Positions 19,516-46,500 of a stretch of DNA of 64,000 nucleotides are shown here, piece after piece. Numbering within the stretch: position 1 is the first letter of the stretch; every line of letters begins with the position of its first letter. The DNA is from Phallusia mammillata (taxonomy: Eukaryota), in the NCBI GenBank assembly GCA_965637545.1, contig OZ281497.1:22072001-22136000 (forward strand). Direction: 5' to 3'. The notes beneath the pieces are model-generated. The model worked only from the letters and a program-made list of their open reading frames with translations, ran no database searches and was not told the DNA's origin. A program made the translations under genes and the position numbers.

Positions 19516-21634
19516 TTAACAGTAACAACCGCTGGTTGTTGAGTTACTGGTTGTTGATGGTGATTTTAAGGATGGACTTGTAGTCAGTTTCTGGAAGAGG
19601 GTACCTGCATTTGTAAAACGTTTGAAATAACCTTTGCGTCATCACAAATTATACATTACTTTCATGTAATAATTACAACCTATTGCAACATCCGCTCAAT
19701 TCCTTGCTAAAGATATTTACACATAACCTAATTTCTATAGTATTATAGTATGTGTTTGGAACAAGTAGCATAATGTGTAACAGCGCTGCGTTTATCTATG
19801 ACTTAATAATTTACCTGTATCTGACTGGTTGGTTGCTTGTGACCGACTAGTAGGGATTGGTTGACTGATTTTCAGGTTACTGGTTAATTCTGCAAAGCTG
19901 TTTGATGCATGACTTGTTGGTAATAATTCTATTGTTGTTGATGGTTGATTTGTATCCATACGTGACGTGGTTGGTTCTTCACACGGATTGCCTGGATGAG
20001 TTGTTCAAAACAAAAGTATGTTTCATAAATAAGAGAATGTACGCTGCAGGTAGTATCGTTATAGCGCAGTAATGGTTGGCCAAAATGTTTTATCAAATAT
20101 ACCGCCCAGATTTAAACAAATCAATGCCTAAATTTTTACAGCCGATCAATTTAGATCGAACAAAGAACTTTTCGTTGTCTGCACAAAAACTCGACCGTCA
20201 GAGTACTATTGGGTGTTTTACATAAGTTTTTTTTTACATTTTTATGTGTCCTTTGGGGTGTTATTAAGGATTTTGCTTTACCGAATATTCGGTTTAATAT
20301 CACAATTTTGTGTCGGGATCATATAGACAAGATAAAAAAAAGAAACCAACCAATGTCACAGATTGGAATGACTTCGGAGTAAATGTTTGTAAGAACAGCA
20401 GCAAGTTGTTCAAAGGATTCCACCGTGGTTACTCTTTCATTAGATATTCCTCCATTGGCGCTTATTTGAAGTTGTTCATGGCTTAGTCTTGTGCCAATTC
20501 CAATTGCGTACACGGTGACGTTGTTAGATTGCGTCAGCTCAAAGCTTGAAACGCACAATAGTTGTAAGACAACTATTTGGTGTGCAAATATTGTCCTTCA
20601 TTTCTCATTACATAGTCTCGTGTTGTTCAATCAGTACATTGTCAGAAAATGGGTATGAATTGTTAAAAGTTTTGGAACCTGTAATTAGGCCGTTGGTGAT
20701 CTGTCGCTTTTCCATCAGTAATGAGAATTAGGACTTTTTTGGCAAAATTTGCTTTTGTCGATTGATTGAAGTTGATCTACAAAAAACGTAAAAAGAGGCC
20801 TTTTCTATTTTGTCTGCAAAAATATTGTCTAAAATGTATATAAATGTTGTATCCCTATTTCAGTTTTTTGACCGTTTTCTCATTTATGTTGTTTAAACCT
20901 CCGTAACAAAAAAAAACGATGAATGCAAATTTACCTTTACTACATGCTCGATGGCCCTTGCAGTATAGGTATTGGATGCTTTTAAATGCATCATATTCAT
21001 GAGAGAGTGTTGTAAACATCGGACTGTTTTGCATTCACCAAGTTTAGTAGGCGATTGATAGTGATGTCGACTGGTTGACAAATAAGTAAGGCTAAAAAGA
21101 GTTTAAGAGTTTTATTTTGTTTTAATAAAAATTTAGACTTTAAGGTTTACTTTCAGCCATTTAACTGGCCATATTGAAGAACTCCAACTTGTAAGCAGGA
21201 ACAAATAGAACGAGTGAAGCTTGAAGACGAATTTAGAAGACCTGCTTTCATTGTTTCGAATGTTGTACTGGTTATTGAGTTCGAAGAGTCAAGAAGTAAA
21301 ATCAGATCAGTGCTGTTTTGTTCGAGTGAGGAAGCTGTAAATTTGCAACCACTAAGTAAAGACATGTCCTATTTCAGATCTAGATTGGTTATAATTCATA
21401 GGCAAGATCTGCGGACAAATATTTATTGCACAGTGTAGTGTGCTCTTGCTTAGTCAGACGCGTCACCGAAATAATTGCGTACAAGAAGTCACTTAAGCGT
21501 ATCAACCGTCCAAATCTCAGAACAGCAACAACGACCTTATTATGCGAAATATTGCGAAAAAACATTTCCTCACCTGTTAGTGGCACGTAAACAAAAACAA
21601 GTAAGAGTGCCCTGTAGGTTTGTCCCAAGTCCAT
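19516..21634 (-). pseudogene. Single-VWA-domain gene (paralog 1), pseudogene, 7 exons
   Basis: Signal-peptide exon MDLGQTYRALLLVFVYVPLT (21634-21574), then a VWA domain with DLILLLDSSNS, NTYTARAI and VLILITDG. In-frame TGA at 21153-21155 where paralogs have AGA. An 8-bp deletion (ggttggaa, relative to 37610-37617) shifts the hydrophobic tail out of frame. Confidence 0.85.
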
Positions 21635-24318: not shown

Positions 24319-26434
24319 CTACGGACCAACATAACGACAGATTTTGCTGACAATTATGGTCTTGCTGGTTGTTGAAGGTTGGCTGGATGATTTGGGCGTT
24401 TGAGTGGTGGTCAGTTTCTCGTACAGAATACCTAAAGAAGTAAACCAACGAGTAGCAAATGGTTAAATCTTACATCATAATATCTTATTGCTTTAACCAA
24501 GACTTAGGTAACTTGAATGATAACGACGTGTATCCGTTCGTACAATATGTGTTTATTTGGAACTAGCACATTAACTCAAAATTTGAAAGGACTATTCCGA
24601 CAAGTGCGTTACAACTGTCAACTACATACAAACTGTCATGTTTTACTTGTTGTTCCTTTTGATCCAGTATCTGGCTGGTTGGTTGTTGTCGTGGATGACA
24701 CATTATTTGACATTGGTTTGTATGTGGTGGTTATTGGTGTATCGGTTGATAAGGTTGCCAATTTTTCGCAATCTTTAAAAATATAACACTTCTTGAGGAA
24801 AACAAAAAACATCTAGCATTCTGATGGCGTCAAACGTTGTCTGCTTGTAATTTGGGTTAATTTTTAATTTGACGTTTGTAAAGTTTTATTTTATATCACC
24901 GGGATAAAAACAAATACTGTTGTCCATTAGGCGGAAAAATGCAGAACTAAAGGTAAAACTAGTTTAAGACATTTTATTTTTCAAACGTTGAAATAACGTA
25001 TACACTGCCTTGTAAGGAACAAACCCAAAACGCAGGTGGGGACGACATGGGAGTAAATGTTTGTAAGAACAGCAGCAAGTTGTTCAAAGGATCCCACTGT
25101 TGTGACTCTTTCATCAGATACTCCCCCGTTGGCGCTTATTCGAAGTTGCTCATAGCTTACTCTTGTGCCAATTCCAATGACGTAGACGGTGACGTTGTTG
25201 GATTGCGTCAGGGCAAAACTAAAACAAAGTTTGTTGTGCATGTATTTGCGTACTTCTTTTTTTCCTTTCATATTTCTCTGATCTCCTACGATATTGTTTC
25301 AGGTAAGTTGCAATTTCAAACCTGCTATCAAGTAGTTTGTAATCAGTCGCTTGTCCATCAGTGATAAGAATAAGAACTTTTTTGGCGAGAGGTGTAGTGG
25401 ATTTCTTAAAGTTGATCTACGCAAAATGCGCATGCGAGCAAATTCTATTTATGAATACTAAAACAAATTGACTATAAGTAAACTTAAAGACGAAATATAC
25501 ATGGTTTGCAACCGAACACAAATTTTGCATCTCGACATTTCAATTGTTATCTTATTTATGATATTCGTTCAAAATGCATAAAAGTCTATAGACTACAACA
25601 AAACTTACCTTTGCCACACGTTCGATGGCCCTTGCAGTGTAGGTATTAGCTGCTCTCAAATGTTCCATTCTTACAACAGAATCTTGGAAACAACTGACAG
25701 TTTTGCAGTCACCAAGTTCGGTAGGCGAATAATAGTGCCTTACACTCGTTGACAAATATGTAAGGCTAAAAACAGTTTTAGAAGTTGAGAGATAATTACT
25801 TTGTTTAAATTAACTTTGGTATTTGCTTGTTTACTTTCTTCCGTTTAGTTGGCCATATAGAAGAACCCCAACCTGTAAACAGGAGCAAATTGAACGATTG
25901 AAGATATGAGATGAGTCTATAAGAGCTGTTTTCAAACTTCCAAACTCAAGGCTGTTAATTGAATTCGAAGTGTCGACAAGTAATATCAGATCAGTGCTGG
26001 TTTTTTCGAGTGAGCTAGCTGTAATTTTTTAATCACAAAATTAAAATATAATCAGGTTTTGAAAAAGCATGTGATGGGTTGACGGTACCTCAGATATGAA
26101 ATATTTGCAATCAACAAAATGTGTAAAATATTGTCAAATTGTTTTTGAACCTACAGATGTTTACCTCAATGGAATGTTTTTTAAACTATGATTGATTTGT
26201 TATAATAGGTGACTACATTGTCGTTGCCAGATCAACGGCTCGCCTTGAGAACATTTACTAATCCAAAAGATTAAGATATATATATATATATATATATATT
26301 TGGAGTGTAAGGGTTGTATGAACAAAATACGTTACATGTAAGCAACAAAATATTCCATGATTTTTATTGTTACCTGCAGATAGCACATAAACACAAACAA
26401 GCAACACTGCTCTGTAATATTGAGTCAAGTCCAT
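24319..26434 (-). CDS. Secreted single-VWA-domain protein with Ser/Thr-rich tail (paralog 2), ~310 aa, 7 exons
   Basis: Signal peptide MDLTQYYRAVLLVCVYVLSA (26434-26374). MIDAS DTSNS...NTYT...ITDG. All exons are GT-AG and join in frame. Ends ...KICRYVGP* with no hydrophobic anchor. Confidence 0.82.
26276..26298. repeat. (TA)n microsatellite in intron 1 of VWA paralog 2
   Basis: Direct TA dinucleotide run. Confidence 0.9.
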
Positions 26435-27020
26435 AGTAAGATTCCTTTCTCGGTTGAAATTCAGTAATTGCTGTCCTGAAAACTTCCAGGCCGGTTTGAG
26501 GATAACTGCAATTCTTTTTGTTAGAATGCTGCGGTTTAAGAGGCAAGTTAAACACCGTATAATATTATGTTTCAACTAAAATAAGGCCTTGCTGTAACAG
26601 CTTTACCCAGTCAGAAATTTATGTCCGGGCCAAGCACAATTATGTTTGGTAACGCTAGGCAGCCACACATGGGCGGCACCTGGGTGCCTTGCTTAAGTTG
26701 TCATATATGTGTGGCGTATGTTCAACAATGAAACACTTCGAGCTTGGCGCCGAACGTTCCAGTTATGTTTGGTCCATACACGATGCCGTACGATCGGCCT
26801 AAGATAATAACCAGGTATGACGGCCCGGTTTTTAGCCATACCAGGTCCTAGTTTAAATATTGTTTGAACCACACATAACCAATCATCTAATATCCTTGGC
26901 ACTGCCAGATTTTGCCGTCTTTCAATATGACACTTCCAATAATATTTCCTGACAATGTATTAAAAAGAAGTACAAAACGAAATATAAAGGACGCCTGGTT
27001 TTGATCGGTGGCCTGGGCAA

Positions 27021-27430
27021 GCATAAAACACACAGTTTGGAGGGCCTGCGAAAAGCATAAGACACACAGGTTGGAGGGCCGGCGCAAATTATAAGACACA
27101 CAGTTTGAAGGGCCGATGCAAAGCATAAATAACACAGTTTAGAGGGCCGGCGCAGGGCATAAGACACACAGTTTGGAGAGCCAGTGCAGGGCATTTGACA
27201 CATAGTTTGGAGGACTGGCGTAAGGCATAAGACACATAGTTAAGATGGACGATGCAAAGCATAGGACACACTGATTGGACAGTCTGGGCAAAGCATAAAA
27301 CACACAGTTTAGATGGCCTGCACACAGCATATAACACACACTTTGGAGGGCCTGTGCAAAGCATAAGACACAAAGTTTAGATGGCTGGGACAAAGTATAA
27401 GACACACAATTTGAAAGGCTGGGGCAAAAG
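27021..27430. repeat. 34-bp minisatellite, ~12 diverged copies (consensus gcataagacacacagtttggagggccNgNgcaaa), subterminal in the transposon
   Basis: Units start at 27021, 27055, 27089 ... 27395, an exact 34-bp period. Confidence 0.93.
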
Positions 27431-27464
27431 CATTCTAAGTCACATGGCTGGCAAACAGACCAAC

Positions 27465-29472
27465 CTATGCATCGTCGCAAGAGTCAGTGTCATCACCTGG
27501 GTTTTCATTTGGCTGTTGGATTTTTGCCCTTTTCACACGCCCGCCATCCCAGTCACCAACCCCTGGAAGGCCCCGTTTAACTGCAGTGCCTATTTCCTGG
27601 TGACTGGCACCATTGTGTCTGGTGTATGGCAGCACATCTACAAAAGTTAAAAACAAAAATTCAATGAATTGAATTTTAAAATCCGTATCATCATAATGAT
27701 AATTACAAAAAAGTTTAAAGAAGTCTTACCTATCAAAAAAGCAAACAAAGGATGAGTTTTAAAAGAAATTTTAGTCTGTTTCCTTCCACAACCCAATCCA
27801 CTCCATGAAAATTTAAGTGCTAGATTTTTCGTCATAAACAACTTGATGAAGTTGCGTAATGTGCCTCGCAGGCCGTCCATATCAATAACTTTTCCAATTC
27901 TTTTCTTGTCCTTCAAGTATGTAAACATGCAATTATGATCACACATAAAACATCGAAACAAATAGAAATGTTTGTCATCCAGTAGTAGGACTGGCAATTA
28001 AATGATAATTTAAGTTACAGTAAAAAAAAACAGATTTTGTTAACACACTACCTGACAATTAAGAGTATTAAGTATTATTGCCCTTTTAGGTGAAAATGTA
28101 GCTTACATTTATTTGAGTGATTAATTCAAGCAGATCTTTTTCATTGTCCGCTGGCTCATGAAAGAAACTTTCTGTCACGGTCGCACACACTTCTTTTTGT
28201 TTCAGTAGTTCAACAATGGTTTCTAGTTTGTCGTCCATCCTTTCCATCTTAGCCATTAGGGCTTGATATTCATTACTATTTAAAGGTCTTTGTTTTGGTG
28301 GTAATGGCCGTTTAAATGTATTTCTGAACATAAAATGAGGTAATTTAACATTTTATGACATAGAAATAAGGAGGTTAAAACAAAAGGAAACCTTAATGCA
28401 ACAATATGCCTTGATCATTGATTATAAATAGCATCAATATGTAATTGAAATAATACAAAAACACAACAGGTCATATTGATAAAGTGGAGTACCCATTGAA
28501 GCAATATTCAGGAGCTAGTGATATGTACATACATTCTTGGTGATGTGTCTGTCCTTATTAATGGTGAAATGTTCTTCGAATAATGAGGTTCTTCTTCGAA
28601 GGATACGTCTGACTCGGAGTCCTCAAAATTACTTTTGGTGTATCCCTTTTTTATACACCGATCATAAGTACCTGCAAATATATAATACAGCCAGTCATGC
28701 TTATAACAAATTTTTTAATACACTTACTAGCTTGACAGAGAATAGTACATGGGCATGTGCACCATTCTTTTTCTGCCACAACTTCTTGTTTGGTCAAATC
28801 CTGCACGTTACACATCTCTGGTGGCCATTTGCAAGCCTCCGTGCCCACCATCCATCCTTTAGGCCAGGGGCGGGCCAGATCCGGCCCGTGACGGGGTTTT
28901 CAGCGGCCCGCGGACAGTTTCCGGTCTTACATGATAATGTGGCCCGCGGCCACAGTCTGCCACAATCACCCACTACTTGCTTACTATGTCAAATTATAGT
29001 TGTAACGGACAGTAACGCTCCCCAATAATAAAAAAAAACTTTCCTGCCGTTGTTACCATTGCACCATACGTCCATTGTTACGACATAACTGCCAACCTTA
29101 TGTGTGGTCTGCTTTCACGGTTTCCTTTGTTTCCACACGTGTACCCTAGTTATAGTGTTTCAGCAGTACCTAAGTCTGTGGTGTATGCATTAAATTTGCT
29201 GTGGTGAATAATTTTATGTTATATCAGTTAGATTGTTTGGACTGTATTGTAATTGTGACGTTCTTGATTGTATTTGGTTTAGTTTAGGTGGTCAAGAATC
29301 CGTTTTAAATCACTGGATAAATACGCGATTAATGTGTCGATTCAGGAATCCGGCCCGCCAAGTACTTCGTTTTCCCATATCAGGCCCGCCGACTGGAGAA
29401 GTTGCCCGCCCCTGCTTTAGGCACAACATCATTTGTGCCGTCACCAAACTTTACACAGACAAAGTTTTTCAT
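27465..29472 (-). pseudogene. Spliced accessory gene of the transposon (DUF4806-like C-terminus), disrupted
   Basis: N-terminal FVCVKFGDGTNDVVPKGWMVGTEACKWPP is recovered after removing the nested MITE. Coiled-coil segment LMAKMERMDDKLETIVELLK. C-terminal LFMTKNLALKFSWSGLG..KISFK and GDWDGGR. This matches my recollection of accessory proteins of animal CACTA-like elements; no search was run. Confidence 0.65.
28865..29414. mobile_element. hAT (Charlie/Buster-like) MITE nested in the transposon accessory gene
   Basis: Perfect 8-bp TSD ctttaggc. Perfect 11-bp TIR caggggcgggc / gcccgcccctg. Repeated ggcccg motifs. Confidence 0.95.
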
Positions 29473-29514
29473 TTTTTCAGCTCTGTAAAATCTCTATTGA
29501 AAACATATATAATT

Positions 29515-31564
29515 TTAATTTTGCAGTAAATTAATAGCAACAAATTTTTCTTTGTATGGCAGTATAATACACTTTCTTATTTCTTGATTAACTTTTAGCA
29601 ATTCAAAATCTTTTTTTAAACCATACACTAAATTTTTCCACTTCTTTAGAATTAACAGGTAATTTAAAAAGTGGATAATTCTTTACATACTGCTGAACGA
29701 TAAAATATAATTTAGAATCAATGTCACAAATGTCACACACTTTGTAAACTTCATTTTTGTGCAACACAGTGGAGTCAGCAATTGTATTTCTTTTAATAAG
29801 AAAATTACTATTTGGCAGTTTACAAGTCTTGTAATAACATAGTGTAAAAAAGGTGGGCGGAAAATCTATTACGAGGTTAATCTCAACCAATGCTATAGCT
29901 TGTTTTTCACGAAAACATTGCCTAGAATCATCAAATGAATACTGAAAATTTTGGTTTTCATAATATGCAAATCTTGCAATTTGTTGTAAAGGTTTGAAAC
30001 CAGATTTGACAATATTTTTCAAAGAACCCAAATAATTTTCAAATGGGAAACAGTTGATGTTTTCTAGAGAACCATATTTTTTGTAATCATCAGACAAATG
30101 AATTAAACAATGTACATTATAACTGACAAATGATTTACCATAAATAAGTGCACACTTACAAACAAAATCTTTTAGCATTTTAGCACTTAAATTTAATTCT
30201 TGTTTTGTAATGTTGACAGATAATAAATATCTCATAGCTACTGAAAATCCCAAAAAATGATAGTATCGTTCAGTAGAGAGGATGTTTTCATTTTTTAATA
30301 AAACTATTCCTACATACAGCATAAATAATCTAAATTCTGTTGCTTTCCAGTAAAGCAAATCAGGGCCTCAATTTTCTGTTAAATTCAAGGGGTATAAATT
30401 CTTTGTATCTCTTAATGTTCTCACTGATCAACATTAGAGCTGTTGATGAAAGCTTTGGTGGAAGTTGTCGTGGAACTCCTCTCCACCAGATTAACAATCG
30501 CCGCATTACTCCTAAACATGTCAAGTGCATATAATCTAGTACAAAGCCTGTAACCATTTCCACATTAAAAGCTGTCAGAACTGAAGTACCAGTGTGGTGG
30601 TTGGAATCGATTTGATGCGAAAAGTCATCATCAGTTCGACTTGGCTCATCTGTTTTCAACTTGCACACCCGATTGTCGAAATATTCACCTTTTACCGTGC
30701 ACCTTTCACAGCTGTGGTAGCCAGTGTGAGACTTGATTAGTTTCAGACTGGAACGAGCTGGAGCATCACAAACATATATTCCTGAATTTCCAAGTTTGTA
30801 AGTAAGGGTATCGCTGCAAATTGGATTGCTTTGCAAATCTTTTATGTCATTTAGTAGTGAATCCAAAAAAACACTCGGGTCTGGCATCTCTCTGTTTGAA
30901 GATTTGTTTGTGCAATAAATTCCTGCACATAGTGGTTTCATATTGACATTTAAAATTGACATAAGTATTGGATAAACTTTAAAATTTGGTGACCCATTAA
31001 ATAAAGGCAAACCATCAATATTGATTAATAAGTAGTACTTTGTTTCACATGTTGATGCCACTTGTCTGATCAAAACTGATTTAAGATTATCTTTCCAATT
31101 GTTAAAGTGTACATAAGCACCACCTAACATATTTTCATAGCAGAGCTTTGGATGTGGCAGCAAAGTGTAAAAACTTGCTGGCAATTCTTTATGAAAGGGT
31201 TGCAAAACTTTGAGTAGTCGAGATACTGCAATTTTTGGTACATTTGGTTCTGTTATTGCCCAGTGCTGAATTGCATTTGTAAGGCTCGGTTTGGTATTAT
31301 ATGCCATTGGCATTGTCTCTGTTGGCTGTAAAATAGGTGCAGAATCAGAGCCAGACATTGATGTTATTGAGTTGGTTGAACTACATATGCTTTCACACTC
31401 ACTGTGTGGTTCAGAATCTTTCATGCTGTGGGTATCTTCCGCAATTATTAAAGCTGCTGCTGCTTGTAGTTTCCTTTCTTCGAAGATTGCTTCCTTCTCC
31501 ATTTCTGTGTTCTTTTTAAGTTGCTGAATGTTTTGTACGCTGCACCCTTTTTTGGTGGCATCAT
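29515..31564 (-). pseudogene. CACTA/EnSpm-like DDE transposase, frameshifted
   Basis: Motifs INIDGLPLF, VCDAPARS, HTGYHSCERC, LDYMHLTCLGV, WKATEFRLFMLY, YNVHCLIHL and FPFENYLG. Clear frameshift at ~30360 and probable ones at ~31490 and ~29610. Confidence 0.9.
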
Positions 31565-32923
31565 TAACCTACGTATTTTAGTCAGATCCAAAATAAACAA
31601 TATAGTCGTCGTACACTAGTAAACCTCCTTGATTAAGACTTTCCCGCCGCCAAGCAACACGTGATCGCTCTTAGTCCGGATTCAAAACGTTCAAGATTAG
31701 CATTAACCAATCAGGACAAACAACGTTTCGTAAAGTTCACAGGTCAAATGATTGCGCAAGTATTGTGCAATTTGGGTTCAACAACGTTTACTTGACAATT
31801 GACATGATTTGTGACATGTGTAATATCTATGTAATTGACGCCCTGAGTTGTCAAAAATTAGGCGCTAACGAACCGTCACGTCAACTTTAGGCTCGCTAAA
31901 GGTACAAAAAAAATAATGATCACACATTAATTGCATTACTTTTATTTTTTTTAATGTTTACCAATTCAAGTCGTCGTACGAATTGTCTTAAAACTATCGC
32001 GTGAAAATGGTGTCAATAATAACATTGTCAACCAATAGCTTAATATTCTCTCAGATACCGCATTTCGCCAGACTCGAACAGGTGTGGCGCCACACTCTCG
32101 GCACCCAAGTATGGCATTTTCTTGCTTAATCTTATCAAAGCCAAGTGTAATTATACAACATTTGCCATTTTAGGTCCTAGTATGGCGAAACCATGTAAGA
32201 CCCATAGAAACAAATATGGCGTATGCTCTGTTAAGTATGAATCGGCCGATCCTGGCATAAACGATAGAAAAACGAGTGTTGGTCGGGTATGGCCCGGGCG
32301 TTAGGTGTAGAAAATTTTTGACTGGGTATTTATTTGAACCGACAAAATGTACTTCCTTTATCATTGCATCCAACCTAATGCTATGTATCAGAAGCGCAAA
32401 ACATTACTTATGAGCATATTTTGCCACTGCAACGACCCGTCACATTGGTGTAGTTACATGGGGTCATGCACAACTAGGCCCACGCAGGAACAACATCCAA
32501 CATTTAAAAAAATCATAACATTGGTTTATCAAACTCATATAAACTGTGAGGTCATTAATTCGTAATTCCGGAATCCGCAAGTGGGCCGAAGCACACTAAT
32601 ATGTTTTTTTCCTCTACGTGCTAGTAAACAAGTATGCAGGTGAAATAATCGAAAATATGTGTTAGTTTTAAACGCGTTTACATTTCACGATAGGCATGCA
32701 GTTACACTCAAACGTCCGACAGCAAAGCCTCGTTTGTCTGTCACAAAGCACTAACAACTATAATTATAAGTGGTACGTTCAATAGGAAAATCATACCTGA
32801 CGGTAGACCCACATTTAGCATATTTTCGATAGGTGGCGGACGAGAACTAGTATTTAGGAATTAAACAGATTCGTGCGTTTAGTTTTTTTTTCAGCCAACT
32901 AGTTTGAATTAAACCAAAAACAT

Positions 32924-34665
32924 CTCGATGGTATGTCAATGTATGAATATTAAACTCAGATATGCCTATAGTTTAGGGTGCAAAAATATCAACGAACGAA
33001 GATTGAGGCGCCGGAAAGAGAAAAGTTTCTTCGCAATTCGGGTTGGATCTAAACCAGGGGTGGGGAACCTACTTAGTACTGCGGGCCGCATGAATTGCAC
33101 AACATTTTCGGGCGGGCCAAATATTTTTTTATTTTCAAATTCCGTGTAAAAATGCCCTAAGCACACAAGTGTTTTATATTTCATCGCTCCGGATTTTTTT
33201 ATATTTCATCGCTCCAGATTTTTTTCTTTGCTGTTACTTATTTGCAACAAACATGGAATTCAGGTTTATCACTTAATTCGACTAACATTTTTCCATTCTT
33301 CTGGAATACCCTAGCTCCGTTATACCGAATACATTTTATAGCTCTAAAATCAATTTAAAACTAACACCACATGGCAAATACTGCAAGGAGAGGTCGAGTG
33401 ACTGTTACGTCACAAATAGAATCGAGTGACTGTTACGTCACAAATAGAACCGAGTGACTGTTACGTCACAAATACAGCAAGTGGTTGAATGTGTGGCAAT
33501 TTTTGTACGTTTGGCGTCAAACGTGGAAGTGTCGAAGTCATTTCAAGTAAATATTTGTACATAAACATTTTATTGTTTTTTTTTATGTTAAGTTTTATGC
33601 TGTACTTTAACAAAATGTTGACGCGGGCCACTTTAAAAAGGCAAGCGGGCCGCAGGTTCCCCACCCCTGATCTAAACAATGAACGTTCGCGAACCGTTCG
33701 AACGAATGTTGTCCGCATACAGACAAAAGTTGGAAAAAGCGACTTCTGAATTTTCAGATCGTTCTAAAGCGATTCGTGCCAAGTACGGTCCAAAAGGTAT
33801 ATATTTAGGCATTTTTTACTTTTCTTTGTAGCAGTGATAAACAGCCCTGGCTTCGCTGAGACGAAATGAGTCTCCATATATTAAGGTTTCAAATGTTTTC
33901 AAAACAATCGCTGTAAATGCTATACCGAGGTTTTCGCCAAAGGAAAAAAATGTTTCAGGTTTTAGGATAATTATTTGTATTTTTAGGTATGCTTTGTTGC
34001 CTGAACGAGCTATAGATAAATTTTACGCATCAAAGACTAGAAACGCTTGGAAATACCCCTTTCATGATTTTCTGGCTATTTTGGCGGTTACTCCATGAAA
34101 TATTAACAGACAAAAAAACAACCCAAATGTTTCGTTTTTAAACTGCGTCACAATCGTATATAGTTGTTAAAATGTTTGAAGGTTACTGAATAACCTTAGG
34201 GTATAATAGCCATGTAGACGCAAATCAGAAAATTGCTGTTTTGTTACTGAAAGATTTTCTGACATGAGCATTTTAAATTACAAGTCATATTATTGCAAAA
34301 ACCCTCTCGGAACGTGTGTCATTGCGCTGGTCTCTGCGTGAGTTATTATTACAATATGTTACAGTATAATACAGAGCAAATTACTGTAATCTTGTGTGAG
34401 CAAACCACAGTTCTTTTCTCTTTACTCGCTTTATTACAGGTATTTCCTGAAGCTCATCGATGCACCAAAGCATATCACACACGGACCAGCGTATACCCGC
34501 CACAGCGACGAAGATATGACACTTCAGTATTACGCAACCGTGGAACCTCGTGAGCGTATCATTCAACTCTACTCACTTCTGCTACAAGATTACCTTATGT
34601 TCGGCTATCCTCCTCCCAAAGCCCTTACTCGTTTGTTCGGAAATGGCAATCCATCATGGCAGTAA
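32924..34665 (+). pseudogene. Partial sulfotransferase duplicate
   Basis: Begins at the end of exon 2, so there is no start, TM anchor or 5'-PAPS motif. Exon 3 is split by a MITE. Exon 4 is removed by a deletion at ~34190. The last exon differs from the intact gene by one residue (E>D). Confidence 0.92.
33055..33669. mobile_element. Young hAT MITE inserted in the sulfotransferase pseudo-exon
   Basis: Perfect 16-bp TIR caggggtggggaacct. Perfect TSD atctaaac. The empty site is visible at 15151 (atccaaac). Internal 28-bp x3 repeat at ~33395-33475. Confidence 0.97.
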
Positions 34666-35219
34666 TAGTATATTCCATCTAGTCTGTATAAATGAGCTTG
34701 CAAGCACATTTTTATACGTTTGAGAAACATTTCAAAAACACAACTTAACTTGCATTGCTCTTTCACATTCCGTTGCGGCTTTATTTGATAAAGTGATGTC
34801 TTTAAAAGATTGTGTTTTCAGTTCCGCTGTTGTGTCTTTATTTTCCACTCTATTGGCCTGCTGATACAGCAATAAGTTGTACATAAATACTTTTTGTTAC
34901 CAAACGCTCAAACCAGCACATAACATATATGCAACTGCTAGAATAGAAGGTCTGCACTGTAGCTTGTCCTAAAACCAGTTGTTCCATATGCAACATTATA
35001 CGTGATGTAAATTTTTGCTTACAAATGTAAATCATGTTTACTGATGAAAAGTTTCTGGTGTGTGAAAATATCCGCCTTTGTCATGGACAGTGCATTAGAT
35101 TGCCGAAATATAACTCTTAGTCTCTTAAAAAAATATGTTGCAAACATTGCCTCATTTAAATAGACTCTCGCAGTCAGGCATAAGCCAAAGGGTGACTAGT
35201 TTACAAGCGTACATTACAT

Positions 35220-35733
35220 CAGTGATTTTCAACCGGTGTTCCACGAAACACTAGTGTTCCGTGGAAGATCGTCAGGTGTTCCGTGAGAAATTTACTGGTT
35301 TGAATATAGGGTTCTAATGTTTTAGAGTTAGACTTATATGGTTTGACTAGAGTTTTATGTCGAACACCGGTTGAAAATCACTGGTTTAAGACAATGGGCG
35401 GAAATGGCTTCTCGTTTATGAAAGTATTTATCTGCCACCACTATTTCAAATGTTCCATAATGATTTCTGACGTTCAGCAAAACTGTTTGCGCGAAAAACA
35501 ATGAATCACGGAACAGCCAGTGCCAGGCGAATATAGTATTTAGGTACAATAGTAGTTTTAATGTTACGTTTTCATAAAACCTCTCCCAAACTTCAATAAC
35601 CCTATATGAGCGTTTCCATCCCTTTCAGTCAGAGCCTAGTTGTTTCATTACTTCAAAATGTCGTTTGGTGTTCCGCATAAATATTTAAATGCATATAGTG
35701 TGTTCCGTGGCTCAAAAAAGGTTGAAAACACTG
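35220..35733. mobile_element. hAT MITE, duplicate of 17010-17646 with an internal deletion
   Basis: Same termini and flanks as the 17 kb copy. Confidence 0.8.
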
Positions 35734-36597
35734 CATCAGATCACATGGTTATACTTGTAAAGCTTTCTCAATTTTAAACAGAAAGGAAAAATAAACAAAT
35801 ACCAACAGATTTTTAGGGGCAAAAACGAACAATAACGACATTAGAGGCCAACTTTTAAAAGGCAAATTTGCTTGATTCACGAGACATGTTTATTACCCCA
35901 AACCACAAAATTGTGAAGTGAACATGTGTTAAAGCCTAACTTTACCATGCAAAAACCGTTCAAGAAAGTAATAATAGTTTCCTAAGGTGGAAATGAACCC
36001 AATCCGTAATTAAATGCAGCAGCGAAGTGAAAAACGTATTTTTGTGTCTCGGGTGACACCTACCCGGAGGACAAAATTTTGGTCAAAATCTTGAGCAACT
36101 AAAACGGATGAAAACACACACCAGCAATCACCTATAAAAGTTGAGGCAAACTGAAATTGTCGTAGTTGGTGTCTAGGTATAAATTTCTTCTAAAATACAA
36201 AAATACCTAAAACCTACTCAAGTGTTGTACACGTAGGTCGAAAACGAATTCAAGCCAGTAGCAATACTTCGCCCATACTTCTGTATGGCAGATGTTTGTG
36301 ATATTGTCGTTTGCGGACATAATTGTAATTGTACATCATGAAAAAAATATTTAATAAAATAACTAAGGGTATTTTTGCGTAGACAAGTTTGGAAAACGTT
36401 ATCATTTATACATTTGAACTAATAAATAACCTATTACGTTATACCTGTGGTCTTCAAACTTGTTTTTGTCAACTTTTAACTATCAGGTAGACGAAGTATC
36501 CGTCAGTTTGGTGCTCTTTAATTCCGTTTAATTCTCTTGAATGTTACATTTATGCAGGCAGGTCCGACTTCGTAAATAGGATCCTTAGGATCTAAAC

Positions 36598-37019
36598 CAG
36601 TGAACCTCAACCGCGGCTCTCAGGGCCGCATGTGGCTTCCGACTACGTATTTTGTGCCCCTCAACAGACCTCAGAAATTTAATAAAGATTATTATAACTA
36701 TGAATAGCAACAAATCTCGATGTTTCAGACATTAGTATATTTAAAAGTCTATATTGGAGTATATTTAAACACTCCAACCCATTCAGTCTAATGGCGAGAA
36801 TAATTACGTACAGCGGTTAACCGTTATCGGCCTGTGTCGAATAAGTCAGAATCAGTATAGGCTTTCTGCAGATAAGTGTTATTGACAAAAAGTAGCTATT
36901 GATATTCTTGTTGTTCGGTGTTATGCTGCATTCGCTTTTATTTCGTTTTTTTTGCGGCTCCTCATATACTTCAAAAACTACCTTTTGGCCCCGACTACAA
37001 AAAAGGTTGATAACGATTA
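36598..37019. mobile_element. hAT MITE, duplicate of 18533-18954
   Basis: Perfect TSD atctaaac on both sides. Confidence 0.78.
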
Positions 37020-37517
37020 ATCTAAACCGTTTATTTAGTCAGAGTCCACATTAAGGTAATAATACGACAGATTCAAACTTTTGATTTAACACAACTAGCA
37101 TCACACGCTTTACCAACTTAACACACTAACTTCAGAATTCCAATGCAAAGCGCTACAAAACTGCCACACAAAAAATGCGTTGATTACAAACACGCTATTC
37201 GCACGAGGACAAACGTTCTGAAGGCAAAAAACGTCTATAGGCAAATAAAAGCAACAATGTTAGTAGCGATAGCTAAAAACACAAACAGGAATATAGCAAT
37301 AATACAGATTAGGGGTTGATATTTTTTGAAAACAAATGCTGTCCCATAATCAAGTGTACATATTTTTTGGAGCATAAATAAATCAAGAAGTCCAATAACA
37401 CTAAATGCACACTAAGGATGGTTTAATTGAAGCATTTTTGTACAGCATGAAAAATATCAGGTCCAAAAACAAAAAATATCAGAAAGATGAACATTTTTTC
37501 TCTCCATTCATACAAGT

Positions 37518-40500
37518 TTAGTATGTTTCAAAGAAGAATGGTTCTATGTAAAGTATGCTAAACACCTCAAGTACAAACCAACAATAGAGCCAGTTCTCAA
37601 CAGTAACAAGGTTGGAACCGCTGGTTGTTGAATTACTGGTTGTTGTTGGTGATATTGAGGATTGAGTTGCAGTCAGTTCCTGGGAGAGGGTCTCTGGATA
37701 GTAAAACGCTTGAAATAACCACTGCGCTATCACAAATTAGACATTACTTTCATATGTAACAACTATAATCTATTGTAAAAAACGCTCAACTCCTTGGTAA
37801 ATATATATTTACACATAACCTAATTGCAAAAGCATTATATTATATATTTGGAACAAGTCGCATAATGTGCAACAGCGCTGGTTTTATCTGCGACTTAATG
37901 GTTTACCAGTTGTATCTGGCTGGTTTGTTGCTGGTGACCCACTGTGAGGAATTGGTTTACTGATTTCCCGGTTACTGGTTGATTCTGCATCGCTGCTTGT
38001 TGCATGACTGGTTTGTAATAATTCTATTGTTGTTAATGGTTGATTTGTGTTCATAGGTGACATGGTTGGTTCTTCACACATATTACCTGGATAAGTTATT
38101 TGTAACAAAAAAAGTTCATCAATAAGGTTGAATGCTAAATAAGTATAAAGCTACAAAAAGTAGATTCTGCTATACCAAATATTTGGCTTCGGTACAAAGA
38201 CATTGTGTCAAGTTCGGCTTAGAGACAAAACTATAATAAACAAACCAATGTCACAAATAGGAATGACTTCGGAGTAAATGTCTGTAAGAACAGCAGCAAG
38301 TTGTTCAAAGGATTCCACCGTGGTTACTCTTTCATAAGATACTCCTCCGTTGGCGCTGATTTGAAGTTGCCCATAGTCTACTCCTGTGCCAATTCCAATG
38401 ACGTAGACGGTGACGTTGTTGGATTGCGTCAGGGCAAAACTTAAAACAAAATATTTTTATTAGAAACTTTTCCCTGTAATATTACTATTCTTTATTTCCT
38501 AACAATATTTGATATTGCACTATTGATAATATGTCAGAAAAAGGTTTAGAATTCAGTGCTGGGGAATTTTAGTGGTGGGGGAAGGCCACTCAACATCTTA
38601 TCATCACTCGTGTAGGCCGCATACTATTTCACAGGCCTAGGACAGTGGTGTTTATTAATTTATAGAATGGTTGTTCTGTAATTTTTTCTTGCATAGTCGT
38701 GGGACTTACGGTTCAAGCTGAATAAAGATAAATAAACTTGCCACGACATTTCCTCCTTCACTGTACATTAGGGTTAATTTTAGCCATGAGCTCTTGGTAG
38801 TCCTACGCGGAAGTCGCCTTGTGTGCCACTACGGGACCATTGGCTCTAGTTTAAACACCGCTGCCCTAGAACTTATAAAACAGTAATGGGAAATCAGAAA
38901 AAAATACATTTTTGTTTGATTTTCTTTGACTGGTGCAGCGTGCAATATCAAGATCCTAAAATGTATTTGGGCATCGAAGGCCGCACTTAGTGCCCTAAAA
39001 ACCGCATGCGGTCTCAGTTTCCCAATCCCTGGTTTGGACTTTGGCAAATCTTACAACCTGGTATGAAGCAGGTTGGAATCTGTCGCTGATCCATCGGTGA
39101 TGAGAATTAGGATCTTTTTGGCGAAATCTGCCCTTGATGATTGATTGAAATCGATCTACACAAAATGAAAATACAGTAAGATGGTTAAATAAATTAAACG
39201 CCTGTAGCAACATAGATATGTATGTACTTCTTGGTCCTTGTCGAGTTCCTTTGGTTTGAAAACCGGTATTGAAAACAACAATTCACCGAACTTACTTTCA
39301 CGGCACGTTCGATCGCCCTTGCAGTATAAGTATTAGCTGCTTTCAAATGCTTCATATTCATGAGAGATTCTTGTAAACATCGGAACGTTTTGCATTCACC
39401 AAGTTTAGTAGGCGATTGATAGTGACTGGGACTCGTTGATAAATAAGTGAGGCTGAAAGCAAATTTTGAAAATAGTGTATCAATTAAAAAAAAATTTAGA
39501 AATGAAAGGTTACTTTCTGCCGTTTAAGTGGCCATATTGAAGAACTCCAACTTGTAGGCAGGAACAAATGGAACGCGTCAAGCTTAAAGACGAATTAAGA
39601 AGACCTTCTCTGATTGTTTCAAAACTTGAAGAGCTTATTGAATTCGAAGAGTCCACAAGTAAAATCAGATCAGTGCTGTTTGGTTTGGACGACGGGTCTA
39701 CAATGATAGAGTTACAACCGGTTTGTTGGTGGCCAATAACTCGCTGGTGGAATTTATTTTACCAGTTGTAGGTACTTTGATGGTCGTTGTTGACTCATTT
39801 ACGGGTGTTGGTTTGTCGGTGGTTATTGGCGTGAAGGTTGGTGTTTGCTCTGTTGTAAAATTCTTGCAGTCTGTATAACAACATTTATAATCCTTACAGG
39901 TCTATACGATTTCAAGCACTTTTTTATCTTCGTTGTTTAACCGGTCAAGGTTTTTAGCGGTGGTACAGTTTATAAAGTATGTTTTTGTACAGCAAGAAAC
40001 CAACCTGTGTCACAGTGTGGAACGACATGGGAGTAAATGTTAGTAAGAATGGCTGCAAGCTGCTCAAAGGATCCCACTGTGGTTACTCTTTCATCAGATA
40101 TTCCTCCATTGGCGCTTATTTGAAGTTGTTCATGACTTACTCTTGTGCCAATTCCAATGACGTAGACGGTGACGTTGTTGGATTGAGTCAGGGCAAAACT
40201 TAAAACGAAATATTCTTGCACGTAACTTTTCGCTGTAATATCACGATTCTTTATTTCTTATCAATATTTAAATTGCATTATTGACAATGTGTCAGGAAAA
40301 AGGTTTAAACTTTGCAAAATCTTGCAACCTGGTATGAAGCAGTTTGTAATCTGTCGCTTCTCCATCGGTGATGAGAACTAGGACCTTATTGGCAAAATCT
40401 GCCCTTAATGATTGATTGAAATTGATCTAAACGAAATGAAAATACAGTCAACTTGTACTTTATAAGATGGTTAAATAAATTTTACACTTATAGCTACATA

Positions 40501-43500
40501 TCTGTTTGTGTACTTCTTGGCCCTTATCAAATTTCTTCTGTTTGAATACCGGTATTAAAAACAACAAGTAACCGAACTTACTTTCACGGCACGTTCGATC
40601 GCCCTTGCAGTATAGGTATTGGCTGCTTTTAAGTGCATCATATTAATAAAAGAGTCTTGTAAACATCGGATTGTTTTGCATTCACCAAGTTCAGTAGGCG
40701 ATTGATAGTGACTTGGGCTCGTTGATAAATAAGTAAGGCTGAAAGCAAATTTTGAAAATAGTGTATGAATTAAAAAAAATTAGAAATGAAAGGTTACTTT
40801 CTGCCGTTTAATTGGCCATATTGAAGAACTCCAACTTGTAGGCAGGAACAAATCGAACGCGTGAAGCTTAAAGACGAATTAAGAAGACCTTCTCTGATTG
40901 TTTCAAAACTTGAAGAGCTTATTAAATTCGAAGAGTCCACAAGTAAAATCAGATCAGTGCTGTTTGGTTTGGACGACGGGTCTACAATGATAGAGTTACA
41001 ACCGGTTTGTTGGTGGCTAATAACTCGCTGGTGGAAGTTATTTTACCAGTTGTAGGTACTTTGATGGTCGTTGTTGACTCATTTACGGGTGTTGGTTTGT
41101 CGGTGGTTATTGGTGTGAAGGTTGGTGTTTGCTCTGTTGTAAAATTCTTGCAGTCTGTATAACAACAGTTATAATCCTTACAGGTCTATACGATTTCAAG
41201 CACTTTTTTATCTTCGTTGTTTAACCGGTCAAGGTTTTTAGCGGTGGTACAGTTTATAAAGTATGTTTTTGTACAGCAAGAAACGAACCTGTGTCACAGT
41301 GTGGAACGACATGGGAGTAAATGTTAGTAAGAATGGCTGCAAGCTGCTCAAAGGATCCCACTGTGGTTACTCTTTCATCAGATATTCCTCCATTGGCGCT
41401 TATTTGAAGTTGTTCATGACTTACTCTTGTGCCAATTCCAATGGCGTAGACGGTGACGTTGTTGGATTGAGTCAGGGCAAAACTTAAAACGAAATATTCT
41501 TGCAAGTAACTTTTCGCTGTAATATCACGATTCTTTATTTCTTATCAATATTTAAATTGCATTATTGACAATGTGTCAGGAAAAAGGTTTAAACTTTGCA
41601 AAATCTTGCAACCTGGTATGAAGCAGTTTGTAATCTGTCGCTGCTCCATCGGTGATGAGAACTAGGACCTTATTGGCAAAATCTGCCCTTAATGATTGAT
41701 TGAAATTGATCTAAACAAAATGAAAATACAGTCAACTTGTACTTTATAAGATGGTTAAATAAATTTCACACTTATAGCTACATATCTGTTTCTGTACTTC
41801 TTGGCCCTTATCAAATTTCTTCTGTTTGAACACCGGTATTTAAAACAACAAGTAACCGAACTTACTTTCACGGCACGTTCGATCGCCCTTGCAGTATAGG
41901 TATTAGCTGCTTTTAAATGCTTCATATTCATGAGAGAGTCTTGTAAACATCGGATTGTTTTGCATTCACCAAGTTCAGTTGGCGATTGATAGTGACTTGG
42001 GCTCGTTGATAAATAAGTGAGGCTGAAAGCAAATTTTGAAAATAGTGTATGAATTAAAAAAAATTTAGAAATGAAAGGTTACTTTCTGCCGTTTAAGTGG
42101 CCATATTGAAGAACTCCAACTTGTAGGCAGGAACAAATCGAACGCGTGAAGCTTAAAGACGAATTAAGAAGACCTTCTCTGATTGTTTCAAAACTTGAAG
42201 AGCTTATTGAATTCGAAGAGTCCACAAGTAAAATCAGATCAGTGCTGTTTGGTTTGGGCGACGGGTCTACAATGATAGAGTTACAACCGGTTTGTTGGTG
42301 GCCAATAACTCGCTGGTGGAATTTATTTTACCAGTTGTAGGTACTTTGATGGTCGTTGTTGACTCATTTACGGGTGTTGGTTTGTCAGTGGTTATTGGTG
42401 TGAAGGTTGGTGTTTGCTCTGTTGTAAAATTCTTGCAGTCTGTATAACAACAGTTATAATCCATACAGGTCTATACGATTTCAAGCACTTTTTTATCTTC
42501 GTTGTTTAACCGGTCAAGGTTTTTAGCGGTGGTACAGTTTATAAAGTATGTTTTTGTACAGCAAGAAACCAACCTGTGTCACAATGAGGAACGACATGGG
42601 AGTAAATGTTAGTAAGAATGGCTGCAAGCTGCTCAAAGGATCCCACTGTGGTTACTCTTTCATCAGATATTCCTCCATTGGCGCTTATTTGAAGTTGCTC
42701 ATGACTTACTCTTGTGCCAATTCCAATGACGTAGACGGTGACGTTGTTGGATTGAGTCAGGGCAAAACTTAAAACGAAATAGTCTTGTAAGAAACTTTTC
42801 GCGGTAATATCACGATTCTTTATTTCTTATCAATATTTAAATTGCATTATTGACAATGTGTCAGGACAAGGTTTAAACTTTGCAAAATCTTGCAACCTGG
42901 TATGAAGCAGTTTGTAATCTGTCGCTGCTCCATCGGTGATGAGAACTAGGACCTTATTGGCAAAATCTGCCCTTAATGATTGATTGAAATTGATCTAAAC
43001 AAAATGAAAATACAGTCAACTTGTACTTTATAAGATGGTTAAATAAATTTCACACTTGCAGCTACATATCTGTTTGTGTACTTCTTGGCCCTTATCAAAT
43101 TTCTTCTGTTTGAACACCGGTATTTAAAACAACAAGTAACCGAACTTACTTTCACGGCACGTTCGATCGCCCTTGCAGTATAGGTATTGGCTGCTTTCAA
43201 ATGCTTCATATTCATAAAAGAGTCTTGCAAACATTGGATTGTTTTGCATTCACCAAGTTCAGTAGGCGATTGATAGTGAATTGGGCTCGTTGATAAATAA
43301 GTGAGGCTGAAAGCAAATTTTGAAAATAGTGTATGAATTAAAAAAAATTAGAAATGAAAGGTTACTTTCTGCCGTTTAACTGGCCATATTGAAGAACTCC
43401 AACTTGTAGGCAGGAACAAATCGAACGCGTGAAGCTTAAAGACGAATTAAGAAGACCTTCTCTGATTGTTTCAAAACTTGAAGAGCTTATTGAATTCGAA

Positions 43501-46500
43501 GAGTCCACAAGTAAAATCAGATCAGTGCTGTTTGGTTTGGACGACGGGTCTACAATGATAGAGTTACAACCGGTTTGTTGGTGGCCAATAACTCGCTGGT
43601 GGAAGTTATTTTACCAGTTGTAGGTACTTTGATGGTCGTTGTTGACTCATTTACGGGTGTTGGTTTGTCAGTGGTTATTGGTGTGAAGGTTGGTGTTTGC
43701 TCTGTTGTAAAATTCTTGCAGTCTGTATAACAACAGTTATAATCCATACAGGTCTATACGATTTCAAGCACTTTTTTATCTTCGTTGTTTATCCGGTCAA
43801 GGTTTATAGCGGTGGTACAGTTTATAAAGTATGTTTTTGTACAGCAAGAAACCAACCTGTGTCACAGTGTGGAACGACATGAGAGTAAATGTTAGTAAGA
43901 ATGGATGGAAGTTGTTCAAAGGATCCCACTGTGGTTACTCTTTCATCAGATATTCCTCCATTGGCGCTTATTTGAAGTTGCTCTTGGCTTACTCTTGTGC
44001 CAATTCCAATGACGTAGACGGTGACGTTGTTGGATTGAGTCAGGGCAAAACTTAAAACGAAATAGTCTTGTAAGAAACTTTTCGCGGTAATATCACGATT
44101 CTTTATTTCTTATCAATATTTAAATTGCATTATTGACAATGTGTCAGGACAAGGTTTAAACTTTGCAAAATCTTGCAACCTGGTATGAAGCAGTTTGTAA
44201 TCTGTCGCTGCTCCATCGGTGATGAGAACTAGGACCTTATTGGCAAAATCTGCCCTTAATGATTGATTGAAATTGATCTAAACAAAATGAAAATACAGTC
44301 AACTTGTACTTTATAAGATGGTTAAATAAATTTTCCACTTGCAGCTACATATCTGTTTGTGTACTTCTTGGCCCTTATCAAATTTCTTCTGTTTGAACAC
44401 CGGTATTTAAAACAACAAGTAACCGAACTTACTTTCACGGCACGTTCGATCGCCCTTGCAGTATAGGTATTGGCTGCTTTCAAATGCTTCATATTCATAA
44501 AAGAGTCTTGCAAACATTGGATTGTTTTGCATTCACCAAGTTCAGTAGGCGATTGATAGTGAATTGGGCTCGTTGATAAATAAGTGAGGCTGAAAGCAAA
44601 TTTTGAAAATAGTGTATGAAAAAAAAATTAGAAATGAAAGGTTACTTTCTGCCGTTTAACTGGCCATATTGAAGAACTCCAACTTGTAGGCAGGAACAAA
44701 TGGAACGCGTGAAGCTTAAAGACGAATTAAGAAGACCTTCTCTGATTGTTTCAAAACTTGAAGAGCTTATTGAATTCGAAGAGTCCACAAGTAAAATCAG
44801 ATCAGTGCTGTTTGGTTTGGGCGACGGGTCTACAATGATAGAGTTGCAACCGGTTTGTTGGTGGCTAATAACTCGCTGGTGGAAGTTATTTTACCAGTTG
44901 TAGGTACTTTGATGGTCGTTGTTGACTCATTTACGGGTGTTGGTTTGTCGGTGGTTGTTGGTGTGAAGGTTGGTGTTTGCTCTGTTGTAAAATTCTTGCA
45001 GTCTGTATAACAACAGGTATATTCCTTTCAGGTCTATACGATTTCAAGCACTTTTTTATCTTCGTTGTTTAACCGGTCAAGGTTTATAGCGGTGGTACAG
45101 TTTATAAAGTATGTTTTTGTACAGCAAGAAACCAACCTGTGTCACAGTGTGGAACGACATGAGAGTAAATGTTAGTAAGAATGGATGGAAGTTGTTCAAA
45201 GGATCCCACTGTGGTTACTCTTTCATCAGATATTCCTCCATTGGCGCTTATTTGAAGTTGCTCATGGCTTACTCTTGTGCCAATTCCAATGACGTAGACG
45301 GTGACGTTGTTGGATTGAGTCAGGGCAAAACTTAAAACGAAATAGTCTTGTAAGAAACTTTTCGCTGTAATATCACGATTCTTTATTTCTTATCAATATT
45401 TAAATTGCATTATTGACAATGTGTCAGGACAAGGTTTAAACTTTGCAAAATCTTGCAACCTGGTATGAAGCAGTTTGTAATCTGTCGCTGCTCCATCGGT
45501 GATGAGAACTAGGACCTTATTGGCAAAATCTGCCCTTAATGATTGATTGAAATTGATCTAAACAAAATGAAAATACAGTCAACTTGTACTTTATAAGATG
45601 GTTAAATAAATTTCACACTTGCAGCTACATATCTGTTTGTGTACTTCTTGGCCCTTATCAAATTTCTTCTGTTTGAACACCGGTATTTAAAACAACAAGT
45701 AACCGAACTTACTTTCACGGCACGTTCGATCGCCCTTGCAGTATAGGTATTGGCTGCTTTCAAATGCTTCATATTCATAAAAGAGTCTTGCAAACATTGG
45801 ATTGTTTTGCATTCACCAAGTTCAGTAGGCGATTGATAGTGAATTGGGCTCGTTGATAAATAAGTGAGGCTGAAAGCAAATTTTGAAAATAGTGTATGAA
45901 AAAAAAATTAGAAATGAAAGGTTACTTTCTGCCGTTTAACTGGCCATATTGAAGAACTCCAACTTGTAGGCAGGAACAAATGGAACGCGTGAAGCTTAAA
46001 GACGAATTAAGAAGACCTTCTCTGATTGTTTCAAAACTTGAAGAGCTTATTGAATTCGAAGAGTCCACAAGTAAAATCAGATCAGTGCTGTTTGGTTTGG
46101 GCGACGGGTCTACAATGATAGAGTTGCAACCGGTTTGTTGGTGGCTAATAACTCGCTGGTGGAAGTTATTTTACCAGTTGTAGGTACTTTGATGGTCGTT
46201 GTTGACTCATTTACGGGTGTTGGTTTGTCGGTGGTTGTTGGTGTGAAGGTTGGTGTTTGCTCTGTTGTAAAATTCTTGCAGTCTGTATAACAACAGGTAT
46301 AATCCTTTCAGGTCTATACGATTTCAAGCACTTTTTTATCTTCGTTGTTTAACCGGTCAAGGTTTATAGCGGTGGTACAGTTTATAAAGTATGTTTTTAT
46401 ACAGCAAGAAACCAACCTGTGTCACAGTGTGGAACGACATGAGAGTAAATGTTAGTAAGAATGGATGGAAGTTGTTCAAAGGATCCCACTGTGGTTACTC

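Follow-up and report, generated by a model that had tools for sequence, protein, structure and literature searches.

LPA, the gene for apolipoprotein(a), carries a kringle IV type 2 (KIV-2) array in which each unit holds two exons encoding a kringle domain, and which arose from a neighbouring paralog. Amplification of a domain has also been described for piccolo b of teleosts, where a domain of zinc-finger type has been amplified 8-16 times in one of two duplicates and unequal crossovers are invoked (PMC3484663). In yeast, a study of the FLO genes describes tandem cell-surface duplicates that form chimaeric alleles by ectopic recombination (PMC3512402). Here we describe a locus of Phallusia mammillata (OZ281497.1, positions 22,072,001-22,136,000; the window, meaning this whole stretch of 64,000 nt) at which a giant gene built of repeated VWA-domain cassettes lies beside two single-VWA genes, paralog 1 (P1) and paralog 2 (P2). 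All VWA genes here are on the minus strand. The window was lengthened by 30 kb, and its numbering, continued outward, gives what we call extended coordinates.

The mosaic at this locus is real and has at least four layers, namely duplication of a gene cluster, formation of the cassette, its amplification and homogenisation, and later exchanges. An earlier reading of the window, hereafter the original prediction, had proposed that the five-exon cassette (exons A to E) is a chimera of two paralogs, taking exons A and B from a P1-like (type-1) gene and exons D and E from a P2-like (type-2) gene. Mixed ancestry stands, with exons A-C of type 1 and exon E leaning to type 2; the assignment of exon D, the breakpoint and the fusion of two genes do not. 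We tentatively prefer, with somewhat less than even confidence, a type-1 body onto which exon E was grafted from a type-2 neighbour, followed by the join that made the cassette, by amplification and by later exchanges.

The giant gene comprises 28 VWA units, of which 27 are intact 741-nt cassettes (U01 to U27) and the last is a terminal unit, U28; exon A was counted in 28 copies. The repeat has a period of 1280-1287 nt and extends from 38.2 kb across the window edge as far as extended position 74353. It was detected by a self-repeat search and blastn, Tandem Repeats Finder (longest period 500) having missed it. The part of the array inside the window and one representative cassette are as follows.

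39698..64000, minus strand: tandem array, window part, from U27 back to a partial U09, of 27 full cassettes
47397..48683, minus strand: representative cassette U21, with splice sites and phases read directly
48500-48683, minus strand: exon A of U21, 184 nt
48280-48436, minus strand: exon B of U21, 157 nt
48027-48124, minus strand: exon C of U21, 98 nt
47704-47897, minus strand: exon D of U21, 194 nt
47462-47569, minus strand: exon E of U21, 108 nt, a Thr/Pro-rich linker of 36 residues
47397-47461, minus strand: junction intron of U21 (exon E to next exon A), 65 nt, phase 1 on both sides

Exons and introns are repeated head to tail, with symmetric phase 1/1 and a frame that is open in every copy, which is what defines a tandem multi-exon cassette. 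The coding length of 741 nt, the lack of any stop codon and all GT..AG sites are kept in 27 of the 27 full units, and the units differ in length through intron indels only (14 of 14 gapped alignment columns are intronic). Identity to the central unit is 95-100%, homogeneity being weakest at the edges (95% in U01 and 96-98% in U25-U27, against 99-100% in the centre). That exon E ends and exon A begins in phase 1 had been predicted, and it can be read from the splice sites, the join itself being seen in the contigs discussed below; the peptide motifs on which the original prediction drew are likewise all present in the sequence. Near-identical units fit its proposal that unequal crossover amplified a phase-1/phase-1 unit.

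The repeated domain carries the motifs of a VWA domain. Searched singly against the Pfam VWA profile (PF00092), exon A matches profile positions 1-46 (E=5e-4, 20.7 bits) and exon D positions 128-172 of 174 (E=1e-3, 19.7 bits), each score falling under the 23.8-bit Pfam cut-off because four exons share the domain between them. An Atlas feature search with exon D led to VWA clusters, and every unit carries the MIDAS-type (metal ion-dependent adhesion site) motifs DSSNS in exon A (DxSxS) and LITDG in exon C (T..DG). Within U02-U08 (extended 64083-73067), alternate units share variants in exons A and B, with U02, U04 and U06 set against U03, U05 and U07, a pattern suggesting that the 5' part of the array has a higher-order repeat of two units. 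A second VWA array of the same family lies on the plus strand at OZ281497.1 20951000-20957500, with matches to 20963302. Its period is ~3.27 kb, it has at least 4 units, and Thr-rich stretches follow its exon D; arrays of several VWA units may thus have had more than one origin in this genome.

Four runs of one study, which are RNA by guess only, yielded intron-less contigs with exact cassette exon ends in the order B-C-D-E-A. Aligned to U26 and U27, these RNA-type contigs skip the 65-nt junction intron, with CT..AC ends on the plus strand. Since the contigs are exact at the exon ends and skip these 65 nt, a spliced multi-unit message exists, granted that the runs are RNA. In the contigs of these four runs there was no coverage of the terminal exons or of the signal exon.

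The two single-VWA genes have a signal exon followed by exons A-E, with the same intron positions in both.

19792..21634, minus strand: P1, single-VWA gene, ATG at 21634, with an in-frame TGA
21571-21634, 21151-21334, 20351-20544 and 19792-19991, minus strand: signal exon and exons A, D and E of P1
24636..26434, minus strand: P2, single-VWA gene that looks intact, with open exons and GT..AG sites
26371-26434, 25835-26018, 25025-25218 and 24636-24772, minus strand: signal exon and exons A, D and E of P2

P2 lies upstream of P1 on the minus strand, as had been stated (ATG at 26434 versus 21634). The TGA of P1 stands at 21153-21155 on the minus strand, two codons before the exon A donor, where the cassette and P2 have AGA (Arg); P1 may be a young pseudogene, or the stop may be a polymorphism or an assembly error.

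The ancestry of exons A-C is of type 1. Cassette exons A, B and C are 84, 85 and 80% identical to P1 at the nucleotide level versus 71, 78 and 74% to P2, which in these exons stands furthest from the other two genes. With four more distant family members of the same exon structure as outgroups, the tree of A+B+C reads (P2,(P1,(terminal unit, units))), with support of 97/95 for P1 plus array, and an approximately unbiased (AU) test rejects both the grouping of units with P2 (p=0.0008) and that of the terminal unit with P1 (p=0.004). The predicted likeness of exons A and B to P1 is thereby borne out and extends to exon C. Third-codon-position identity in A-C is 0.80 between cassette and P1 and 0.61 between cassette and P2; for the giant gene against P1 it is 0.76-0.80, with introns near saturation. 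Intron identities were dropped as a clock, as global alignment with lax gaps gave ~62% even for shuffled sequence, and were replaced by third codon positions and local-score shuffles. The closest outgroup gene (OZ281497.1 20868500-20874500; L004 ~1900-2040), on the minus strand, is without the linker exon E. Its exon D continues into a short hydrophobic tail followed by a stop, and this tail looks like a membrane-anchor signal.

On the 5' side of the giant gene, 1.4 kb upstream of the signal exon, lies a gene fragment.

Extended 76392-76694 (L002 ~2392-2694; OZ281497.1 ~22148392-22148694), minus strand: truncated P2-like relic

The 5' flank and signal exon of this relic match P2 at 63.5% over 244 nt (z ~24), whereas P1 and the giant gene's own 5' end reach z ~8-9. 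Its exon A fragment, which reads FLLDDSSNSIDNREFK, is 79% identical to P2 versus 71-74% to P1 and the cassette. The relic is decayed, with an ATG followed by TAA and an intron reduced to ~24 nt, and to judge from these features it is a dead type-2 remnant outside the giant gene. Besides the relic, no homology was found between the region upstream of the giant gene and that upstream of P2. From 5' to 3' on the minus strand, the cluster thus runs from the type-2 relic and the giant gene in a type-1 slot, through a block and a spacer, to P2 and P1 and a second copy of the block. Because a P2-like relic stands upstream of the giant gene, the locus reads as an anciently duplicated pair, type 2 followed by type 1, that is present twice, with the giant gene occupying one type-1 slot. 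A duplicated cluster had been part of the original prediction and gains support here.

Exon D requires more care. Phylogenies by exon divide, as A-C group with P1 but the maximum likelihood (ML) tree of exon D places array units with P2 (support 85/86), although an AU test rejects neither units with P1 (p=0.20) nor units and terminal unit with P1 (p=0.13). Third-position identity between cassette and P1 is 0.81 in the 5' half of exon D and 0.78 in the 3' half, versus 0.80 in A-C; between cassette and P2 it is 0.91 in the 5' half (p=0.0008 vs A-C) and 0.66 in the 3' half. For the 3' half, the likelihood ratio of keeping the A-C relationships over swapping them is 42, and the motif likeness to P2 once pointed out there rests on three residues. 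The elevated identity in the 5' half coincides with a delimited tract of P2.

25077..25218, minus strand: array-type conversion patch in P2, first ~140 nt of exon D (cassette 47897 to ~47756)

This patch has 8 mismatches to the cassette in ~142 nt, with mismatches dense on both flanks. The terminal unit also matches P2 here (third-position identity 0.94). On the simplest reading, P2 was converted by array-type sequence and the cassette did not inherit its exon D from a type-2 gene; because P1-P2 identity climbs to the cassette-P1 level within the patch, we infer that the exchange ran from the array to P2. The resemblance of cassette exon D to P2 is therefore not confirmed as one of ancestry, its synonymous sites behaving like those of A-C, and a breakpoint that would derive both D and E from type 2 loses its support. 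More generally, peptide-motif resemblance can mislead, the likeness of exon D to P2 probably running from array to P2. One other candidate breakpoint, in intron C, came from the point at which the site pattern separating cassette and terminal unit from P1 and P2 ends (Fisher p=2e-9). It is confounded and was rejected because that pattern vanishes in the 5' half of exon D through the array-type sequence of P2, cassette and terminal unit staying 92% identical to ~47794.

The terminal unit is itself a mosaic, and its 3' part belongs to a much larger duplicated block.

38336..39697, minus strand: array-type portion of U28, the terminal unit, with exons A-C and the first ~104 nt of D, by identity to the cassette
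38548-39031, unstranded: insertion in intron C of the terminal unit only, 484 nt, unrelated, which breaks the blastn match
37884..38335, minus strand: P1-type remainder of U28, comprising the final ~90 nt of exon D (to 38246), intron D and the terminal exon E
37884-38086, minus strand: terminal exon E with stop, local score to P1 of 245 vs a null of 22
32922..38335, minus strand: downstream block, copy 1, starting midway through exon D of U28 and extending into the 3' flank
14913..20448, minus strand: downstream block, copy 2, the same ~5.5-kb block at the P1 locus

Beginning with exon A at 39697, U28 is cassette-like in exons A-C and carries the stop in its exon E. Measured against the cassette, U28 is 98% identical in exon A, drops to 83% by intron C and stands at 92% in the 5' half of exon D. 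The unit follows the cassette to ~47794 (window ~38336) and P1 thereafter, and mismatches between terminal unit and P1 stop at that point. Beyond it, identity to P1 is 94.8% over the last 97 nt of exon D, 84.9% in exon E and 86% in the 3' flank. A self-blastn pairs 15026-20552 with 32922-38447 over the 5.5-kb block, and identity within the block steps up away from the gene, from ~85% to 94% and then 99%. Since this is above the old level of A-C, the P1-like end would reflect a younger exchange and is not simply the untouched end of the old partner gene. The expectation that the terminal unit ends like P1 thus holds strongly as a description, and is not supported as an account of an original end left in place. 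Cassette-P1 identity in the 3' half of exon D is at the old level (0.78), which favours exchange in the direction from P1 to the terminal unit. In the intron C insertion, RNA-type contigs match 38840-38872 and 38958-39000 and then diverge, as for a dispersed repeat.

It is in the linker exon E that a type-2 contribution to the cassette would lie. Cassette exon E is colinear with exon E of P2 (codon shuffle 1/500), and shuffle z-scores for its similarity are 6.1 to P2, 2.8 to the terminal unit and 0.3, in effect absent, to P1; similarity between P1 and P2 is nonetheless kept. Branch counts for the three lineages (cassette/P1-type/P2) are 19/27/11 in exon E versus 25/22/62 in A-C, a difference in pattern with Fisher p=7e-6, or 2.5e-4 with another aligner. 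Exon E has had either a different history or very different rates, and its similarity leans to type 2. The predicted resemblance of exon E to P2 thus holds weakly at the nucleotide level, the amino-acid signal being aligner-dependent.

We hypothesize the following order of events. An old duplication of the type-2/type-1 pair would have left two copies, of which the upstream type-2 gene survives as the truncated relic and the type-1 gene became the giant gene. The cassette would be of type 1 from the signal exon through exon D, with exon E, perhaps together with intron D, grafted from the type-2 neighbour through unequal exchange within the conserved exon D or shortly behind it. The end of exon E would then have been joined, illegitimately, to the point where an exon A begins, producing the phase-1/phase-1 cassette; the junction donor lies in GGTAAA, which is coding (Gly-Lys) in type-1 terminal exons. 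Unequal crossing-over would have amplified this cassette to 27 copies, a process probably still homogenising them and leaving the edge units least homogenised. Later non-allelic exchanges would have carried array sequence into ~140 nt of P2 exon D, and passed the mid-exon-D segment with the 5.5-kb 3' flank between P1 and the terminal unit.

Several observations weigh against the graft. Exon E is short and of low complexity, so that alignment may favour two sequences of equal length. At the amino-acid level p is 0.06-0.7, and a third aligner removes the amino-acid signal (p=0.25-0.7), the nucleotide signal remaining. The cassette donor motif, ACAACTGGTAAA, exactly matches coding sequence in exon E of the terminal unit, not that of P2, and the junction intron likewise shows similarity to that terminal exon (z=4.2). 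Cassette intron D aligns to nothing (z=0.7 to intron D of P2), though the flank of the relic still aligns to P2. Outgroup polarisation of the exon E indels failed, the nearest other family members (L004-L007) having unrelated 3' ends. Finally, the graft needs one event more than a plain internal duplication.

Such a duplication, without any graft, is the foremost alternative. Here the upstream gene would be of type 1 throughout, and an internal tandem duplication would span the stretch between a point immediately ahead of exon A and one close to where the gene's own terminal exon ends; the short form of exon E would be ancestral, kept by the cassette and P2, and the P1-type exon E would have diverged. 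P1 might be decaying, as its in-frame TGA would allow, and the P1-like end of the giant gene would be a later conversion from P1, later exchanges being independently shown. This account has the fewest events and accommodates both the uniform third-position identity to P1 from A through D (0.80/0.81/0.78) and the type-1 likeness of donor motif and junction intron; moreover, exon E and the junction intron form a single open frame of 57 codons that ends at a stop in the acceptor. It does not readily explain why cassette exon E is unlike that of P1 yet like that of the more distant P2, with P1-P2 similarity kept, as it needs the cassette and P1 to have been fast and P2 very slow in exon E, the reverse of the branch counts in A-C. 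We consider it possible, and only somewhat less likely than the graft.

The original prediction specified a deletion that joined a type-2 exon E to a type-1 exon A, giving a cassette A1-B1(-C)+D2-E2 and a first unit that keeps a type-2 signal peptide and a DTSNS exon A. This draws on the motif resemblances, on the ML tree of exon D, on the lean of exon E to P2 and on the former presence of a type-2 gene upstream of the array, to which the relic attests. The 5' end of the giant gene contradicts it. In U01, the 5'-most unit, exon A is of cassette type (DSSNS, 95.7% to the cassette), as are exons B-E. The signal exon of the giant gene, whose ATG is at extended 74953, shares 84.4% identity with P1 versus 69.8% with P2, nearly the same as the figures for exon A (84.2% vs 70.7%). 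As the signal exon lies outside the repeat, homogenisation of the array cannot explain its likeness to P1. Had a deletion fused a type-2 gene with the type-1 gene that follows it, the type-1 signal exon would have been lost, and the fusion is therefore unsupported; the type-2 signal exon exists instead as the separate dead relic. With exon D also keeping its type-1 relationship at synonymous sites and the AU test not rejecting array with P1, we regard this history as very improbable.

That the mosaic is an assembly artefact, from repeats collapsed or mis-joined at the array edges, we all but discount. In its favour, an array of 97-100% identity is difficult to assemble, so that the number of units may be off, and two DNA runs contain only ~0.6 of sampled edge-region words. 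Against it, the breakpoints fall outside the identical core, in sequence that is unique and diverged (terminal unit 77-92% to the cassette; P1 and P2 70-85%), the lengths and variants of the units are patterned in an orderly way, and RNA-type contigs confirm the cassette structure.

Returning to the graft, a bolder claim would be that every intermediate of the giant gene's birth stands side by side here, with single-domain paralogs, the donor's relic, the grafted linker, and a junction intron made from old C-terminal coding sequence, the stop codon of which now provides the acceptor AG. We put this forward with low confidence; if true, the way in which a protein of 270 residues grew to one of roughly 7,000 could be read directly, step by step.

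The remainder of the locus bears less directly on the giant gene, its downstream block being separated from P2 by a spacer.

27019..32900, unstranded: spacer between the giant gene's downstream block and P2, with a 34-bp tandem repeat and transposon-like open reading frames (ORFs)

The 34-bp repeat has 12 copies (27019-27433), and at 29603-31502 on the minus strand two adjoining ORFs of 380 and 251 aa, the second matching Pfam DUF4218 (E=5e-7), are transposon-like. An element of ~150 nt occurs 3' of all three genes (19016-19161, 22952-23107 and 37080-37231; 72-78% identity) and is perhaps a fragment of a repeat or else a conserved 3' element. Elsewhere in the window, a direct repeat of ~1.4 kb (1360-2787 / 3085-4496, 88% identity) is unrelated to the VWA genes.

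Set beside the systems named at the outset, the locus shares with the KIV-2 array of LPA a phase-symmetric multi-exon cassette, head-to-tail order, near-identical exons and introns, an origin from a neighbouring paralog, and edge repeats that are more diverged. It differs in having five exons per unit, which encode a VWA domain and a Thr/Pro linker, and in that single-domain paralogs and a relic still adjoin the array. Few clean cases keep precursors, relic and junction together, and the layers form a series, from old cluster duplication through cassette formation and ongoing homogenisation to two later exchanges, in a gene whose product is expressed if the runs are RNA. The locus may also serve as a worked example for annotating hidden giant genes in tunicate genomes.

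For piccolo b (PMC3484663), the amplification is that of a single exon, in contrast to the five-exon cassette, new junction intron and 27-28 copies seen here. As in the FLO genes (PMC3512402), paralogs of surface or adhesion type exchange segments and make chimaeras; those are intronless yeast genes, whereas the exchange tracts here end inside exon D and reach flanking DNA. Mucins with a variable number tandem repeat (VNTR; PMC13345508) offer a further parallel as very large, Thr/Pro-rich, repeated extracellular proteins, a character predicted here from sequence; their repeats lie in one large exon, whereas here a folded VWA domain is spread over four exons with a 36-residue linker exon. Amplification of a domain cassette and exchange between tandem paralogs are thus known processes, and the locus is a well-preserved new example of them rather than a new mechanism.

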